DNA of 64,000 bases, from positions 186,001-250,000 of the IMG/VR virus record IMGVR_UViG_3300050821_009835. One strand, given 5' to 3'. This document shows, piece after piece, positions 50,653 to 64,000 of this stretch. Each line of letters begins with the position of its first letter. Positions within the stretch are counted from its first letter, which is position 1. Position numbers and translations under genes: made by a program. The notes below the pieces were generated by a model that was not told the DNA's origin, searched no databases, and was given only the letters and a program-made list of their open reading frames with translations.

Positions 50653-50775
50653 ATGGAAACAAATTGGCATGAATGGACGAGTTGTGAATTTTACGGTCAT
50701 GTTTTCCAGACCGATGAAGAAACTGGCCGCACTCATTGCACAGACTGCGGTGAAAAAACCGAAGACCACGAGTAG
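50653..50775 (+). CDS. Small zinc-ribbon protein (40 aa)
   Basis: GGAGG RBS; C..GH...CTDC; its stop overlaps the 5' end of tRNA-Ile. Confidence 0.45.
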   Translation: METNWHEWTSCEFYGHVFQTDEETGRTHCTDCGEKTEDHE

Positions 50776-50842
50776 CTCAGTTGGTAGCAGCAATTGGCCG
50801 ATAACCGATAGGTCGCAGGTTCGATCCCTGCCTCGTGGACCA
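50766..50842 (+). tRNA. tRNA-Ile(GAT)
   Basis: Acceptor CCACGAG/CTCGTGG, anticodon loop CC-GAT-AA, TTCGAT T-loop, encoded CCA. Confidence 0.9.
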
Positions 50843-50929
50843 AAATTTTAATGGAGGCCAAATATGGCTGAAGAAAAGGAACAGCACGAGGAGTATCCGA
50901 TGAACGGGCCTTGTTGCTAGAGGAATTTT

Positions 50930-51011
50930 GCTAGGATGGCTCAGCGGCGACAGCAGCAGTTTCGTACACTGCCATACAAACACAGGGGTTCGAGTCCCCT
51001 TCCTAGCTCCA
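50930..51011 (+). tRNA. tRNA-Thr(CGT) with 11-nt variable region
   Basis: Acceptor GCTAGGA/TCCTAGC, stem GCAGT/ACTGC, loop TT-CGT-AC, TTCGAGT, encoded CCA. Confidence 0.85.
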
Positions 51012-51016
51012 AGTTT

Positions 51017-51089
51017 GCAGATGTAACACAATTGGCAGTGTACTTCCTTGGTAAGGAAGAGGTTGTGGGTTCGACTCCCATCGTCTGCT
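51017..51089 (+). tRNA. tRNA-Thr(GGT), CCA not encoded
   Basis: Acceptor GCAGATG/CGTCTGC, stem CTTCC/GGAAG, loop TT-GGT-AA, TTCGACT. Confidence 0.9.
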
Positions 51090-51311
51090 CTTTCGTGACT
51101 TTCTTTAAGAAAGGTTCATGACGAATTATGAATAACGGGTGCCCATGTAGCAGCTGTCATCCATACGGTGCAGCTTATTGTTGGTGTTTTCTCCACAGAC
51201 TAGAGCACCCGTTAGTAGAGAAGATTATCAATGCGGAGAGCTGGCGTGAAACCAGCCAATTGATGAATGAACTTTACACGACGTATTTGAGTCGTTTAGG
51301 AAGATAAGTTT

Positions 51312-51397
51312 GCTGGTATCGCATAGTGGCCGATTGCAGCAGTTTTGTAAACTGCCGGAGAAATCCCACGGGGGTCCAAATCCCTCTGCCAGCTCCA
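51312..51397 (+). tRNA. tRNA-Thr(TGT) with long variable arm
   Basis: Acceptor GCTGGTA/TGCCAGC, loop TT-TGT-AA, V-arm GGA-GAAA-TCC, T-loop TCCAAAT, encoded CCA. Confidence 0.85.
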
Positions 51398-51404
51398 AAA
51401 TTTT

Positions 51405-51491
51405 AGGGCGGTCGGGTAATGGCATCCCACCTGACTTTGAATCAGACGAGCCTTCGGCTCATTGTAGGTTCGAATCCTACCCGCCCTGCCA
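51405..51491 (+). tRNA. tRNA-Gln(TTG) with long variable arm
   Basis: Acceptor AGGGCGG/CCGCCCT, G73, loop CT-TTG-AA, V-arm GAGC-CTTCG-GCTC, TTCGAAT, encoded CCA. Confidence 0.88.
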
Positions 51492-52483: not shown

Positions 52484-52516
52484 AAACGGGTCTCCAGTTA
52501 ATTGGAGACCCGTTTT
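52484..52516 (+). terminator. Intrinsic terminator
   Basis: 13-bp perfect stem AAACGGGTCTCCA/TGGAGACCCGTTT. Confidence 0.8.
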
Positions 52517-53306
52517 GCCAGTATTAGATTCTATGATTCAAAAAGCTACAGCCAAAGGTATGCGCCCGTATCAAGAAGATACTTCATTCATTTGTACTCA
52601 TCCTCACGGCGATCTTTTCGGTGTGTTTGACGGTCATGGTGGTCTAAATTGTTCTACATATCTTAGTGAACATTTTCCAGAAGCGTTCATTACACATTAC
52701 GAAGAAGTCTATGGTGATGCATACGAGGATTCTGTCGATGAGAAAGAAGTTTCTTTTTACAAATTTCTATCAAAAGCTGCTATGCGCAAAGCGTTTTATC
52801 AAATGGCAGATGAAACCAAACAGATGAGAAATGGTTCAACGGCCTCTGTGATTTGGGTGTTTCGTAAATTAAATTTTGCTGTTTGTGCGGTAATTGGCGA
52901 TTCTCCTATTATTGTTGGGACTGGTAAAAGGAGCTATCACTTAGGGCCGGATCACAATGCACGTTCCAACACAAAAGAGCGGGAAGCGGCTGAGAAACGT
53001 GGGGCATTTTGGGACGGTTATTATCTGTGCCATAGTTGGCATGGGGGCGGACTTCAAATGAGCCGCGCTTTGGGGGATTGTTCTCTACCGTTTCTTAGTC
53101 GTGTACCTCAAATCTATACTCAAAAGGTGCACGATTTTGTGTTAGTTGGAACGGATGGTATTCTAGACCCAGGGCATAAGAGTCATGATATGGTGCCGGG
53201 TATGGTAAAGGCAGTTCGTGAAGGAGCTACTGCGAATCAAATCGTCGCGACAGCACTCGCAGTTCCCACCGGGGACAACGCCACTTGTCTGATTTGGAGA
53301 CCATAA
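52515..53306 (+). CDS. PP2C/PPM-family Ser/Thr phosphatase (likely start ATG 52533 or 52560)
   Basis: RPYQED, FGVFDGHGG, GSTA, GDS, SRALGD, GTDGI and DNAT motifs. Confidence 0.9.
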   Translation: MPVLDSMIQKATAKGMRPYQEDTSFICTHPHGDLFGVFDGHGGLNCSTYLSEHFPEAFITHYEEVYGDAYEDSVDEKEVSFYKFLSKAAMRKAFYQMADETKQMRNGSTASVIWVFRKLNFAVCAVIGDSPIIVGTGKRSYHLGPDHNARSNTKEREAAEKRGAFWDGYYLCHSWHGGGLQMSRALGDCSLPFLSRVPQIYTQKVHDFVLVGTDGILDPGHKSHDMVPGMVKAVREGATANQIVATALAVPTGDNATCLIWRP

Positions 53307-55226
53307 TTGCAGCTCAACGAGGAACAGCTTCTAGCTGTAGAACATTCCATTGGGAGCCCGGCAGTATTGGTAGCGGGTGCAGGTAGTGGTAAAACAAGAG
53401 TTCTTACTGAACGTGTTCGTTGGTTGATGAAGCAAGGCATTGCCCCTCGCCGGATTTGCGTTCTAACTTTTACTAACAAAGCTGCGGGGGAATTAGTCAA
53501 TCGTTTGGGTCTTGGGCCAGAAGTTCCTCGTGATCAGGTTCCCCGCGTTAGCACAATTCACTCTCTTGCTCTTAGTGCCATTCGTCGCAATCCTCAAGGT
53601 TTTGGCCTTTTGTCTCGTGTTTCCCCACTTGATGAAGGTGATGCGGGCAGTATGATTAAGAAAATCATCGATCGCTTAGAATTAGATGAAAATCAGTGGG
53701 CAATGTTGGAAGTGATAAGTTACCACCGTGCTCGTGGTCTTTGCTTTTCTAGTGACTATACAGATGAAATCCATAAAATCTCGGAAAAGGCGCACGGCGG
53801 TTATCATGCTATGGATGCTGGACGGCTTGCTATCTGGAAGGCATACGAGGCGGAGAAGAAAGCCAATTCCGTAGTTGACTTCGATGATATGGTACATCTA
53901 GTCGTTCATCGCGGTAAAATGGATAGCACCTGGCGCGGGAAACTTGAAAAGACCTTCGAGTTTTTATTGATGGATGAAGCACAGGATACCAACCCGATTC
54001 AATGGGCGTTTGTCAATTTATTAGTTGCACCAGACAATCCAAATCTATATGTTGTCGGTGACATGAATCAGAGCATCTACGGCTTTAATGGGGCTACCCC
54101 GGAACTCCTTAAAGAATACAGTGAGGGTTGGCGCGGTGTTGTTCCTAAACTTTACAAGATTCAACGCAATCATCGTTCTGTCCCCGAAATTGTTAATCTC
54201 GCGAATGCTACCTGCGCTAAAATGACCAATTCGATTCCACTGAAAATGGAATCCTGGCGAGGGATCAATAATGAACATGGTACCACCAAATTGATGAAAG
54301 CGTGCGAACCACGCGACATTGCTGTTCAGATAGCAACAGAAATTTACCATGATGCCAACCTTAAAAAGAATCCCATAGTCTATCGTGACAACGCTGTGTT
54401 AGTCCGTAGCGGTAAGACTCAAGTCCGGGATATAGAAGCTGAGTTGGTAAAGCGGCGCATCCCTTATGTGGTGCGCGGCGGCCTGTCCCTCCTTCAGACG
54501 GAAGAGGTTCGCGATTTGATGGCGTATATGAGGCTCATTGCAAACCCAAACGATTTCATGGCGCTCGTACGGGCTTCAGGTATTCCAAAGCGTGGCGTGG
54601 GGCCGAAGGCGCTAGAGGATATTCGTGATCGAGCCAAGCTACAGCACAGCAATGACTTGGTTGCTGCCAGCGCCAGCGACAAGAAATTGGGCGGTTTCGC
54701 TGCCATGATAAAGAGTCTTGGAGATTACCGAGATGATCCTTTCAAGGCGCTTCAAGAACTCATTCGTCTTCTTAATTATGGTCAGATCATTCAGGATAAG
54801 TACAAGCGTGAACCGGAGCGAGTACAGCAGAAATTGGAGAATATCAATCGTTTACAGATGATGTTTCAAATTCTCCTTGAGGAGAATGAAATGACCATCG
54901 AGGATCTGGTGTTCCAGTTGAGTATGAATAAACAATCTGAGCAATCAAATAAAGACGAAGGGAAGGTTGTCATTAGTACGATCCATTCTGCTAAAGGATT
55001 GGAATTTCGGCGCGTATACGTGACCAATTGTTACGAAGGCTCCCTTCCTCATAAATTTTCAATGGGATCCCCATCGGAAATTGAGGAGGAAAGGCGGCTT
55101 TTTTATGTGGCATGTACTAGGGCCAAGGACAACCTTACACTCTGCCTCCCAGCAATGATTCAACACGGTCCAAATACTACTGCTTTAACTCCCAGCAGAT
55201 TTCTATACGAAATTGGCGTTCACTGA
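53307..55226 (+). CDS. uvrD: UvrD/PcrA-family SF1A helicase
   Basis: AGAGSGKT, LTFTNKAA, STIHS, MDEAQDT, VVGDMNQSIY, NHRS, TIHSAKGLEF and EERRLFYVACTRAK. Confidence 0.95.
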   Translation: MQLNEEQLLAVEHSIGSPAVLVAGAGSGKTRVLTERVRWLMKQGIAPRRICVLTFTNKAAGELVNRLGLGPEVPRDQVPRVSTIHSLALSAIRRNPQGFGLLSRVSPLDEGDAGSMIKKIIDRLELDENQWAMLEVISYHRARGLCFSSDYTDEIHKISEKAHGGYHAMDAGRLAIWKAYEAEKKANSVVDFDDMVHLVVHRGKMDSTWRGKLEKTFEFLLMDEAQDTNPIQWAFVNLLVAPDNPNLYVVGDMNQSIYGFNGATPELLKEYSEGWRGVVPKLYKIQRNHRSVPEIVNLANATCAKMTNSIPLKMESWRGINNEHGTTKLMKACEPRDIAVQIATEIYHDANLKKNPIVYRDNAVLVRSGKTQVRDIEAELVKRRIPYVVRGGLSLLQTEEVRDLMAYMRLIANPNDFMALVRASGIPKRGVGPKALEDIRDRAKLQHSNDLVAASASDKKLGGFAAMIKSLGDYRDDPFKALQELIRLLNYGQIIQDKYKREPERVQQKLENINRLQMMFQILLEENEMTIEDLVFQLSMNKQSEQSNKDEGKVVISTIHSAKGLEFRRVYVTNCYEGSLPHKFSMGSPSEIEEERRLFYVACTRAKDNLTLCLPAMIQHGPNTTALTPSRFLYEIGVH

Positions 55227-61425: not shown

Positions 61426-63453
61426 ATGGACAAAATTCAACGGAAACAGCTTTTCTTAGAATATGCTTCCGATTCAAAAACCTGGTACGCAAAAGTACCT
61501 ACTCTAGAGCCCTGTGAACTAGGTTGTGGAAGACGAGCCGCCTTTCTCCTTAAAAACTCTTGGCTCTTCTGTTGCCAAAATTCAGCCAAGCGATGCCTCA
61601 ATCCTCTGCTCACATCCAACCTTATCTGTTATGGATGTGGGCAGTCAGCTTCTTTGTTGCAAACCTGCGGACCTGTCTGTGGGAAACTCCCAACAGGAAT
61701 CCGTTGCCCCGTCGCTGCAGAAGAAAACAAACTACGCAGGAAATCCTCCGCAAAACAGCATTTTCAGGATCCTGTATTTGCCACCCAACGTCAGAAAAGG
61801 TTTGTTGCTACCATGATGAGTCGCCACGGCGCTCCGTCTGCTATGGCTTCTCCGGAACTCCGTAAGAAGATTTCTGCAACGATCCAAGAAAAGTACGGTG
61901 CGGATTGGGCACCTAGCATCCCTGGTGTTTTCGATGCGGCTCGTCAACGTTGCCAAGACGAACATGGAGTGGATCATTGGACTAAACTAGACTCTACGAA
62001 ACAAGCTCGAGCTGCAACTTGCCTAAAACAATATGGATTCTCCAATCCTGTAAAGTCCCCCATCGTGTTGAACAAACGCAGACAGAATTGGCGCAATAAA
62101 TATGGGGCAGATCACCCTCAGCAGATTAAGGCAATCACTGATCGTCGATACAAAACGTGGTTGAAAAATCAAGGCGGTTTAGTCTTTGGAAGTCCAACTT
62201 GGTGGAACAAATACCAGCCTTCCTACCAACAACGTACAGGATTTGCTCATCCCACTCAAGATCCTGAACGCATTAGAAAATGGATGAAGACCTTCTATCC
62301 CAGTTGTTTCCGTACTAAAGAAATGGTTCTTCCTTCAGGGAACACCATCCAGTTCCAAGGGTATGAGGACAAAGCCATCAACCATTTGCTAAAGAGTTAT
62401 CGTGAGAATGGCCTGCTCTGGGGAGATGAGATCCCGCAAATTACCTATGTTAAACCTGACGGGGAGCCGGGATTGTATTTCCCTGATCTTTGTCTCGAAC
62501 ACGAGAAGATTCTCATAGAAGTTAAATCCACTTATACCTTGATGGAGGAGATACAACGAGGATTGCTCAGGGCCAAGTTCCAGGGAGCGTTAAAAGCAGG
62601 CTGGAATCCTCGAGTAGAAGTCTGGTCCGAGAGGGAAGATTTTCCCGTGGAGATTGACGCTAACCTGATTTGTCAGGATGACGGATTTGAGTCGTTCTCT
62701 TCCTTCATTTTAGAGTTGTGGCCAGAAGCCAAAATTTCTTTCTACGAAATAGAAGTCCCGGACATCGGCGCTATTGACTACCGCGTCCTGTACCAATTCA
62801 TGAGTGGGGTGAAAAAGAAATTCAAAACTCCCCATTTTGTCGTGTTTGAAGATGAGTGGAAAACAAGACCCAATATCGTAAAAAACTTCTTGTTTTCCCT
62901 TGTTAAGTCGAAACGACAGGGAAGTCGTATCGTACCTCAATTCCTTACTCATGGTCGCCTACTCCCTGAGCACAAAATATTCCTGCAAGAGCAGCACTAC
63001 CTAGGAGCAGTAAAAACGGGAGGATTGGTGATTTCCGCCATCTGGGAAGGGAAGATTGTGGGCCTTTGGGTGTTCAAGAAGCGAAATTCTGAAACTGCGG
63101 AGTGGACTCGAGCTTGCTGGGACCACAACTTTAAGGCTTGGCAACCTCATGGTGAAGCTCTCCAGATAGCCAAGGAGAAGTTAGCGCAGCAAGGAATAAA
63201 GGAGATGGTGAGTTTCTCTGACAACCGATATCATTCAGGAAAACTCTACGAGGCTTTGGGATTTTCTAAAACAGGTGAATTACCTCCGGATTACATGTAC
63301 ACCGACGGGCACGAACGCCAGCACAAATTCCGTTTTCGGGTTCCCGCAGGCGTCCCTGAGGAAGAATTCGCCGCCCGCAAAGGCTGGTACAGAATTCAAG
63401 ACCTAGGGAAATTGAGATTCGGTCTAGAAACGTCGTCACCTCCAAGCAAGTAA
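61426..63453 (+). mobile_element. Composite homing-endonuclease-like protein (Zn modules, YG repeats, PD-(D/E)XK nuclease, Hef-like C-terminus)
   Basis: CELGCG/CYGCG, KYGADHP-type repeats, YFPDL...IEVKSTY and SFSDNRY..G.LYEALGF...PDYMY. Confidence 0.7.
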
Positions 63454-63518: not shown

Positions 63519-64000
63519 TTAGTTGAATTCGACCAGATAGCGGATATTCGCTTGCGACGTACGATAGACAATTTGCTCGTCGTTGATTACGCCAGAGCGA
63601 CCCGGCTTGGCCCAGCAAGAATCATAACCGAGGCGTTTGCCGTTGCCGCTACCGCTCGGGATGTACTCCTTGCCCATCGCCACGTCAACCATGAACATGT
63701 AGCAGTTCTTGTCACGCGACCCGCCGTCCCAGTAGCCGTATGCATAATTTAAACTTTTTGTGCTCATCGCGGAGAAGTAGAGACCAGTCCCATACATCGC
63801 CCCTGTGGTTTGAACCGTGCTCAATTCGGTGGGCAAAACAAATCCACGTTTCAAAATCGAAAGCACATTGAACATGCGAGTGCCATGCCACAAAGATTTG
63901 ATGTTACCAACCTTCTTACCGTCAGCATTAAAGGCCGCTTCCATGTGCGGGATGCGAACTTCGTATACACGAACCGGGCGAAGATGTGAGCACTCGTGAC
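63519..64000 (-). CDS. PARP-type ADP-ribosyltransferase catalytic domain, C-terminal part; open at right edge
   Basis: LWHGT (H), GAMYGTGLYFS (Y), SLNY, MFMVDVAMG and NDEQIVY (E). The frame is open to the window end (HECSHLRPVRVYEV). Confidence 0.88.
   Translation of the reverse strand, partial: HECSHLRPVRVYEVRIPHMEAAFNADGKKVGNIKSLWHGTRMFNVLSILKRGFVLPTELSTVQTTGAMYGTGLYFSAMSTKSLNYAYGYWDGGSRDKNCYMFMVDVAMGKEYIPSGSGNGKRLGYDSCWAKPGRSGVINDEQIVYRTSQANIRYLVEFN

Follow-up and report, generated by a model that had tools for sequence, protein, structure and literature searches.

A PARP gene at the end of the window

We analysed a 64,000-nucleotide stretch of DNA, hereafter the window, which is positions 186,001 to 250,000 (G000:C1:186001-250000) of IMG/VR virus record IMGVR_UViG_3300050821_009835 (G000), a linear sequence of 264,912 bp that is about 78% complete. 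Our subject is the gene that runs off the end of the window and encodes a poly(ADP-ribose) polymerase (PARP)-family protein, a kind of ADP-ribosyltransferase (ART). In eukaryotes, enzymes of the PARP type provide a central signal of DNA damage, and to our knowledge almost nothing is known of their role in bacteria and phages. On the minus strand a reading frame (63519-63998) is open from its stop codon at 63519-63521 up to the window edge. Its translation runs ...LWHGTRMF...GTGLYFSAMSTKSLNY...GVINDEQIVY...EFN followed by the stop, and contains the motifs LWHGT, GLYFS and NDEQIVY. Even alone, this fragment matches the Pfam PARP model PF00644 far beyond chance (E = 4.8e-21; 75.6 bits against a cut-off of 26.7). 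An earlier sequence-only reading had seen here an intact, PARP-like H-Y-E triad whose N-terminal domains lie outside the window. Both points are borne out, the first by the Pfam score and by alignment to the H, Y and E of PARP1 and PARP3, the second by 877 nt of the open reading frame (ORF) that lie beyond the window end.

The full ORF was retrieved from a stretch of the same record that reaches past the window (L002). It encodes 452 amino acids, is intact and is neither truncated nor degenerate. The complete protein matches PF00644 (E = 2.2e-20; 73.5 bits, cut-off 26.7) and PHROG 23333 (9e-49). A Logan assembly made independently from a soil metagenome run has an identical protein in the same gene order, and an exact copy is listed on a contig of 340,335 bp. 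In alignments to PDB sequences and in profile alignments, H331, Y367 and E434 line up with the catalytic triad of PARP1, PARP2 and PARP3, and the sequence STKSLNY that follows GLYFS holds K374 and Y378, the equivalents of PARP1 K903 and Y907. By its sequence the gene is confirmed as an intact phage-encoded ART of the H-Y-E (PARP) clade. Scans for promoters and terminators near the gene found no signal exceeding shuffled expectation, and no clear Shine-Dalgarno sequence precedes its ATG. Coordinates of this and other features are collected in Table 1.

Table 1. Positions of the PARP gene and of other features in the window and its parent record. Plain numbers are window positions.
Feature	Position	Strand	Basis
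PARP gene, C-terminal 159 codons and stop codon	63519..64000	minus	Pfam PARP, PHROG 23333
PARP gene, full, 452 aa	L002:519-1877 = G000:C1:249519-250877 = window-equivalent 63519-64877	minus	ORF call
Codon of catalytic His331 (LWHGT)	63885..63887	minus	aligned to PARP1 H862; equivalent of CdPARP H322
Codon of Tyr367 (GLYFS)	63777..63779	minus	aligned to PARP1 Y896
Codon of catalytic Glu434 (NDEQIVY)	63576..63578	minus	aligned to PARP1 E988; equivalent of CdPARP E428
675-aa protein, DUF7487 (residues 173-392) and HNH/homing-endonuclease-like C-terminus	61426..63453	plus	Pfam/PHROG
NadV/NAMPT, 476 aa	56346..57776	plus	Pfam NAPRTase and NAMPT_N; NCBIfam PRK09198 494 bits (cut-off 405); PHROG 448
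NadM-like NMN adenylyltransferase-Nudix fusion, 323 aa	55415..56386	plus	Pfam NUDIX and weak CTP_transf_like
Stand-alone Nudix hydrolase, 174 aa	49464..49988	plus	Pfam NUDIX 9e-11
Probable neck/tail module, just past the window	L002:1936-11838	plus	
Tail sheath, 1204 aa, within this module	L002:6144-9758		
GIY-YIG endonuclease gene	L002:13086-13850	minus	
NADAR gene, 184 aa, outside the window	G000:C1:137158-137712 = L070:1489-2043	minus	Pfam 74.8 bits
LigA-type NAD-dependent DNA ligase, 401 aa, outside the window	G000:C1:78363-79568 = L089:1273-2478	plus	
Polyvalent-type protein, 1822 aa, outside the window	G000:C1:107924-113392 = L010:924-6392	minus	

Domain architecture and predicted fold

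The sequence-only reading had asked whether WGR or regulatory domains precede the catalytic part, and the N-terminal part of the full protein indeed consists of these two. The protein has three domains: WGR (residues ~12-96), helical regulatory domain (HD; ~114-255) and ART catalytic domain (CAT; ~270-452), with Pfam PARP_cat at residues 282-404. In a phmmer search of PDB sequences, residues ~150-406 and 432-451 match the helical and catalytic domains of PARP3, PARP1 and PARP2 (E ~1e-14), these alignments starting inside the HD of PARP1-3 at residues ~150-166. A family profile (A1) built from 37 relatives aligns with the WGR-HD-CAT chain of PARP1, 4dqy_C, over positions 12-438 and to the C-terminus (E = 4.5e-31), and with PARP2 chains from the WGR domain through most of the catalytic domain, the catalytic Glu falling in a second segment. 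In this profile NNNKF..WGRVG of the phage family pairs with NNNKYY..WGRVG of PARP2.

An AlphaFold2 model (mean predicted local distance difference test score, pLDDT, of 76.8) shows a beta-rich N-terminal domain, helices over residues 114-255 and an ART fold, the catalytic region lying mostly at pLDDT 80-94. The best Foldseek matches of the model are DNA-bound PARP2 (7aeo_A; E = 6e-23) and PARP1 WGR-CAT (4dqy_C; TM-scores 0.63/0.62); the probability is 1.00 against the catalytic domains of PARP1, PARP2, PARP3 and PARP4, and WGR-containing chains are among those to which the model aligns. Sequence threshold, H-Y-E triad and ART fold place the protein in the PARP/ARTD family (PF00644), and the presence of both a WGR domain and a helical regulatory domain places it in the WGR-HD-CAT type to which PARP1-3 and the bacterial PARPs belong.

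Conservation of catalytic and WGR residues

Conservation was tallied over 179 full-length relatives, including 115 metagenome proteins, 44 IMG/VR loci, 17 bacterial genomes and 2 cultured phages. H331, Y367, K374 and Y378 are each present in 179/179 and E434 in 177/179, the remaining two being alignment gaps. The WGR domain is under comparable constraint: G58, K84 and Y93 occur in 179/179, R59 in 178/179, N26 in 177/179 and K29 in 175/179. In the helical domain, L182 and L234 are invariant in the A1 family and can be set beside the core leucines L181/L236 of CdPARP by number only. Such strict constraint on catalytic and WGR residues over some 180 relatives argues that phages use break-sensing ADP-ribosylation, and from sequence and architecture the enzyme is apparently active, its catalysis being predicted.

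Relation to known ADP-ribosyltransferases

The closest characterised counterparts in layout are two bacterial enzymes, CdPARP of Clostridioides difficile CD160 (52 kDa) and HaPARP of Herpetosiphon aurantiacus (47 kDa), which are similar in size to the 452-residue phage protein and have the same order of WGR, helical domain and PARP_cat. Both modify themselves with poly(ADP-ribose) in the presence of NAD+ and activated DNA, HaPARP is reported to require DNA for activation, and their poly(ADP-ribose) glycohydrolases (PARGs) reverse the modification (PMC5966428, PMC8120803). The conserved zones described for CdPARP are the triad H322/Y359/E428 and the WGR segments N34-Y39, Y57-G61 and K88-Y93; the phage triad is H331/Y367/E434, and its G58 and R59 carry the same numbers in CdPARP (PMC5966428), a near coincidence of published residue numbers. 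Like the phage protein, many bacterial PARPs have no detectable Pfam PARP_reg and are nevertheless helical in this region in models. A difference is that C. difficile and H. aurantiacus own a DUF2263-type PARG, whereas none was found in the phage record.

The WGR-HD-CAT core of human PARP1, and PARP2/PARP3, share domain order, fold and catalytic residues with the phage protein; against these human enzymes identity is only ~18-21%, with Foldseek E of 6e-23 to 1e-21 and profile E of 4e-31. The phage protein differs in having neither zinc fingers nor BRCT, and no N-terminal tail. The ARTs of T4, Alt, ModA and ModB, are also NAD+-dependent phage enzymes, as the phage PARP is predicted to be, but they are mono-ARTs of the R-S-E clade that lack both WGR and regulatory domains, and Alt is a head-packaged protein (PMC8120803, PMC9503650). 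The contrast with Alt/Mod drawn in the sequence-only reading is correct, though not new (PMC9503650, PMC7824862).

Distribution of the family

A word-index search retrieved 491 proteins at E <= 1e-5, the best of them 60-71% identical and many on contigs of 300-450 kb; many carry the Pfam domains WGR, PARP_reg and PARP together. The search covered proteins of 0.55-1.75 times the query length, longer fusions being outside its range, and shorter matches without WGR surfaced only in the search for related loci (L057-L068). There are 59 related loci in IMG/VR and 18 in GTDB genomes; besides many Armatimonadota, the latter comprise Gemmobacter, a Paracoccus plasmid, Variovorax and one bin each of Gemmataceae and Bacteriovoracaceae. 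Bacterial copies fall into three clusters in a FastTree phylogeny, which puts the query in a clade made up of 67-80 sequences from metagenomes and viruses with support of 97-100; these ~70-80 soil and metagenome sequences show 51-71% identity.

GenBank has full-length homologues, 31-35% identical across 97-98% of the query (E 1e-41 to 3e-57), in two Xanthomonas phages (XacN1 and Xoo-sp13), two Stenotrophomonas phages (CM1 and RAS14) and three Klebsiella phages (05F01, FBKp34 and KP13-16), while proteins of Cellulophaga phages phi17:2 and phi4:1 match residues 246-449 only. Several of these phage homologues, including those of XacN1, Klebsiella and Cellulophaga phages, are labelled poly(ADP-ribose) polymerase; the full-length homologues in RAS14 (OP752703.1 45206-46480) and KP13-16 (OP617741.1) are labelled just 'hypothetical protein', and the CM1 record (OP883945.1) carries no annotation whatever. 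ORF414 of XacN1 (BBA65562.1) served as the jumbo-phage PARP example of Iyer et al. (2021; PMC7824862), and PART/PARP proteins of the H-Y-[EDQ] clade are among the most frequent viral ARTs (Iyer et al., 2022; PMC9503650). The PARPs of XacN1 and of the RAS14/CM1, Klebsiella and Cellulophaga phages are in the same PHROG family (23333) as the query, but the query lies in a separate, well-supported clade and the gene neighbourhoods are unrelated. By its sequence the protein is a new member of a computationally described family of phage PARPs with bacterial-PARP layout and predicted catalysis, to which it contributes a well-conserved clade of soil jumbo phages, and the cultured relatives (XacN1, RAS14/CM1 and Klebsiella 05F01) make its function accessible to experiment.

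A model for break-gated ADP-ribosylation

Taken with its relatives, the phage PARP is probably a minimal WGR-HD-CAT ART that is gated by nucleic-acid breaks or ends. According to this model, the WGR domain would bind a break or end of DNA (or of another nucleic acid), and this binding would free the NAD+ site from its block by the helical domain. The catalytic domain could then move ADP-ribose, as single units or short chains, to itself, to proteins at the break site or to the nucleic-acid end, while both phage and host DNA undergo cutting, replication and joining. The NadV-NadM pair encoded nearby would provide general NAD+ maintenance and counter-defence through the NARP2 pathway, incidentally refilling the NAD+ used by PARP and ligase, and would not be a dedicated partner of the PARP. 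Activation by DNA breaks is suggested by the architecture and, by analogy, by the HaPARP and CdPARP assays (PMC5966428, PMC8120803).

Several points weigh against this reading. The WGR match (residues 20-88) reaches 19.2 bits, under the Pfam cut-off of 22, and PARP_reg (PF02877) has no Pfam match in the query protein, so that both domains are detected only through profile, fold and relatives; many relatives pass Pfam WGR, and PF02877 is carried by relatives P0048 and P0076-P0120. The inter-domain geometry of the AlphaFold2 model is uncertain (predicted TM-score, pTM, 0.56). Between the strand that follows VAMG and the catalytic Glu there are ~25 residues, against ~60 in PARP3; being ~35 residues shorter than in PARP1/PARP3, this segment is tankyrase/PARP4-like in length and indicates that the loop region of PARP1/2 type is missing. 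The catalytic domains of tankyrase and PARP4 align over residues 308-451 as one stretch. H-Y-E enzymes may be mono-transferases, as PARP3 and PARP4 are; the triad is required for chain formation but does not by itself ensure it, and is compatible with either mono- or poly-ADP-ribosylation. The PARP sequence occurred in no RNA run examined, and we found no experimental study of any phage PARP in the literature. The gene neighbourhoods, moreover, differ between clades, which makes any argument from context weak, and a divergent tail-module neighbour could point to a virion-associated or late role.

A further idea, which we regard as unlikely but worth stating, is that WGR-PARPs guard nucleic-acid ends, by modifying either terminal phosphates or the host nucleases, repair or defence proteins that gather there. 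The triggers might be free ends or nicks in the phage genome as it infects or replicates, or broken tRNA or other RNA, and the targets might include RecBCD-like, restriction or retron-type sensors. If true, phage DNA would be protected or defence blinded, and break-gated ADP-ribosylation would be a form of counter-defence without a described phage precedent. End guarding is not contradicted by the placement of the gene beside ligases and end-processing enzymes in two clades, nor by the fact that no dedicated eraser was found here.

Gene neighbourhood and the effector alternative

The phage (>265 kb, 45.9% GC, 29 tRNA genes) carries, just past the window and divergent from PARP, the probable neck/tail module, which encodes proteins of 452, 203, 568 and 142 amino acids, the tail sheath, and proteins of 147 and 525 amino acids. 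The sheath is 44.6% identical over 99% of its length to its counterpart in Tunturi_5, a Tunturiibacter phage of 309 kb from Finnish soil with an Acidobacteriota host, and as the gene order is also similar, this suggests that the source is a soil jumbo myophage of acidobacterial type. On its other side PARP is convergent with the DUF7487/HNH gene, which terminates 65 nt away from the stop codon of PARP and adjoins PARP in none of the related loci. Within 10 kb of PARP this phage also has genes for UvrD, nucleotide kinases and NAD salvage.

Relatives place the gene differently. A clade 53% identical to the query (L014) has topoisomerase II subunits, dNMP kinase, Endonuclease_NS, an Rnl1-type ligase, PARP, a MazG-like protein and thymidylate synthase (ThyA); in phi17:2 PARP has a tRNA nucleotidyltransferase on one side and a DNA ligase on the other; and in Klebsiella 05F01 it comes after a cluster with UvrD and Macro and before an anaerobic ribonucleotide reductase. 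These contexts favour a role in nucleic-acid transactions over that of a head-packaged effector, yet they vary between clades.

They bear on the alternative that the protein acts as T4 Alt and ModA do, as a break-independent and possibly virion-associated takeover effector that modifies host RNA polymerase, translation factors or other proteins. About 44% of phage ARTs are found in head/packaging contexts (PMC9503650), and here PARP abuts a neck/tail module that includes the sheath gene. However, the structural module is encoded on the other strand, and PARP shows no fusion to MuF, portal or other head proteins; other clades place it among genes for replication and nucleotide metabolism; and the invariant WGR residues, together with the retained helical regulatory domain, argue for an activity that is gated by nucleic acid rather than constitutive. 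We therefore hold a takeover role to be doubtful.

NAD-salvage genes and the question of a dedicated cycle

The sequence-only reading had placed the PARP near its own NAD supply genes and suggested a closed write-erase-recycle cycle. The genes it named, NAMPT, an NMNAT-Nudix fusion and a second Nudix, are indeed present in the window (NMNAT, nicotinamide mononucleotide (NMN) adenylyltransferase). The NadM-like ORF overlaps the start of NadV; its NMNAT half is weakly supported, by a weak HIGH-type nucleotidyltransferase N-terminus and weak matches to the NCBIfam bifunctional NMNAT/Nudix models. The stand-alone Nudix has weak NCBIfam matches to generic MutT-like (d)NTP diphosphatase models, none of them ADP-ribose-specific. 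Adjacent NadV and NMNAT genes make this a NARP2-type salvage pair, NadV with NMNAT being the described NARP2 counter-defence pathway (bioRxiv 10.1101/2024.02.11.579819).

The nearness of PARP to these genes holds within the window but is not conserved in relatives, and it looks incidental. NadV and PARP are 5.7 kb apart, on opposite strands, with at least eight unrelated genes between them, the DUF7487/HNH gene being one of these. In a survey of 26 large PARP-positive viral records, 17 of them complete, NadV was present in 16 (11 of the complete ones), lying 14.7-145 kb from PARP, with a median of 35 kb. When the ORFs within 10 kb on either side of PARP at 47 loci were clustered all against all, no neighbour at the query locus recurred beside PARP in the 46 related loci, save NadM in 3, and a conserved PARP operon was rejected since no partner is shared with the query locus. 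Tunturi_5, the nearest cultured relative of the phage, has NadV and no PARP, phi17:2 has PARP and no NadV, and NAMPT occurs in 1,771 phage records against 16 for PARP. The locus itself is ordinary in this respect, NAD-salvage neighbours being a common jumbo-phage module that is independently explained. The phage also encodes the LigA-type ligase listed in Table 1, which has the adenylation and OB part only (~first 380 of 652 LigA model positions) without the C-terminal modules, and which is a further user of NAD+ that may draw on the salvage genes.

Searches for the ADP-ribosylation erasers Macro (PF01661), PARG (PF05028 and PF10021) and ARH (PF03747), for which reference genomes gave positive controls, found no match at E <= 1 in the 264,912-bp record, about 78% complete as it is, so that the check for macrodomain and PARG genes proposed in the sequence-only reading came back empty; SIR2 was likewise not found in the record. 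Accordingly, within this incomplete record no dedicated eraser gene was found that would complete a cycle of poly- or mono-ADP-ribosylation. Among the PARP-positive relatives Macro is present in 12/17 complete records (published baseline 56%, p = 0.17) and a bacterial-type PARG in 3/26 (2/17 complete). The sole candidate ADP-ribose hydrolase in the record is the NADAR gene, ~112 kb from PARP in a tRNA-rich region, which also matches the NCBIfam 'NADAR family anti-phage protein' model weakly. NADARs strip ADP-ribose from the bases of nucleic acids, and phage enzymes of this family neutralise DarTG1 (PMC11543638, PMC11825919). It is plausible that this protein is an anti-DarT counter-defence enzyme, and as this role explains it better and the gene is unlinked to PARP, we rejected it as the PARP eraser.

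The closed cycle, in which PARP, NadV, NadM-Nudix and the second Nudix would form a dedicated unit, is thus not supported, because Macro, PARG and ARH were not found, the linkage is not conserved and the second Nudix is generic. Its appeal is that all four genes lie within 14 kb, that nicotinamide, the by-product of PARP, would be chemically recycled by NadV, that the 5.7-kb PARP-NadV spacing is the shortest among the records surveyed, and that NadV occurs in 65% (11/17) of complete PARP-positive records against a published 33% of jumbo phages (PMC9503650; binomial p = 0.007, uncorrected for phylogeny and with a baseline from a different data set). Set against this are the strands and intervening genes, the wide spacing in relatives, the phages that have one gene without the other, an NAMPT some 100-fold commoner than PARP in phage records, and a role for NadV with NMNAT that has already been demonstrated as NARP2 counter-defence (10.1101/2024.02.11.579819). 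We judge such a cycle to be very unlikely.

Least probable is an NAD+-draining suicide or exclusion device, in which break-triggered hyper-activation would abort superinfection or shut off host metabolism: PARP1 hyper-activation depletes NAD+ in eukaryotes, and bacterial copies on a Paracoccus plasmid and in scattered genomes are usual for conflict genes, but the same phage encodes NAD+ synthesis and an NAD-dependent ligase, which would work against depletion, the context is unlike a defence island, and no toxin-antitoxin-like partner occurs in the loci compared. Break-gated ADP-ribosylation by a WGR-HD-CAT enzyme is the reading that we prefer to these.

Other features of the locus and of related loci

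ARAGORN places the 29 tRNA genes in three clusters, at G000:C1:132442-173791 and 236766-237491, the latter being window 50766-51491, where five tRNAs (Ile, 3 x Thr and Gln) lie between the stand-alone Nudix and the gene for a PP2C-type Ser/Thr phosphatase. This phosphatase gene is followed directly by a UvrD-type helicase gene and then the NadM-NadV pair (window 52515-55226, plus strand). In Klebsiella 05F01 a UvrD helicase and a 'putative phosphatase', the latter matched by the Macro search, lie a few kb upstream of PARP, a resemblance that may be coincidental. Mobile endonuclease genes (the HNH/homing-endonuclease-like gene and the GIY-YIG gene of Table 1) flank the module boundary that holds PARP, with a possible relation to the non-conserved placement of the gene.

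The 1822-aa protein has a GNAT domain (residues 378-462), a 2H/LigT/Acb1-like phosphoesterase domain (517-656) and a ParB-like region (691-782). Its N-terminal ~110 residues are weakly KptA/Tpt1-like (PDB E = 0.07; PHROG 5470 E = 5e-4; HGT..GIYFA). The KptA/Tpt1 RNA 2'-phosphotransferase is an ART of the H-H-h clade, and the protein may hold a second ART-superfamily domain of the phage. It was rejected as a second PARP, its PF00644 match being weak (13 bits) and its type more that of KptA/Tpt1.

Among the relatives, the block given above for the L014 clade, which is conserved and co-oriented and whose topoisomerase II subunits are GyrB-like and ParC-like, is present in L014, L015, L016, L017, L019, L020, L021 and L050, and the L014-type subclade includes a complete genome of 360 kb. 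In a subclade of 34-40% identity, a gene family of ~200-230 amino acids lies downstream of PARP, at 14-950 bp and on the same strand in L023, L028, L029, L031, L035, L038 and L046 and at ~4.5 kb in L030, L034 and L037. It has no Pfam match and no homologue in the query phage, and its conserved motifs are FTAFDVTK..LR...H..VR at the N-terminus and D.RGR..I....R..G at the C-terminus. Considered as an eraser, this ~220-aa gene product was set aside, as by eye it resembles a small DNA-binding or AbrB-like protein instead. A vWA protein encoded downstream of the XacN1 PARP, and absent from the query phage, belongs to a different family.

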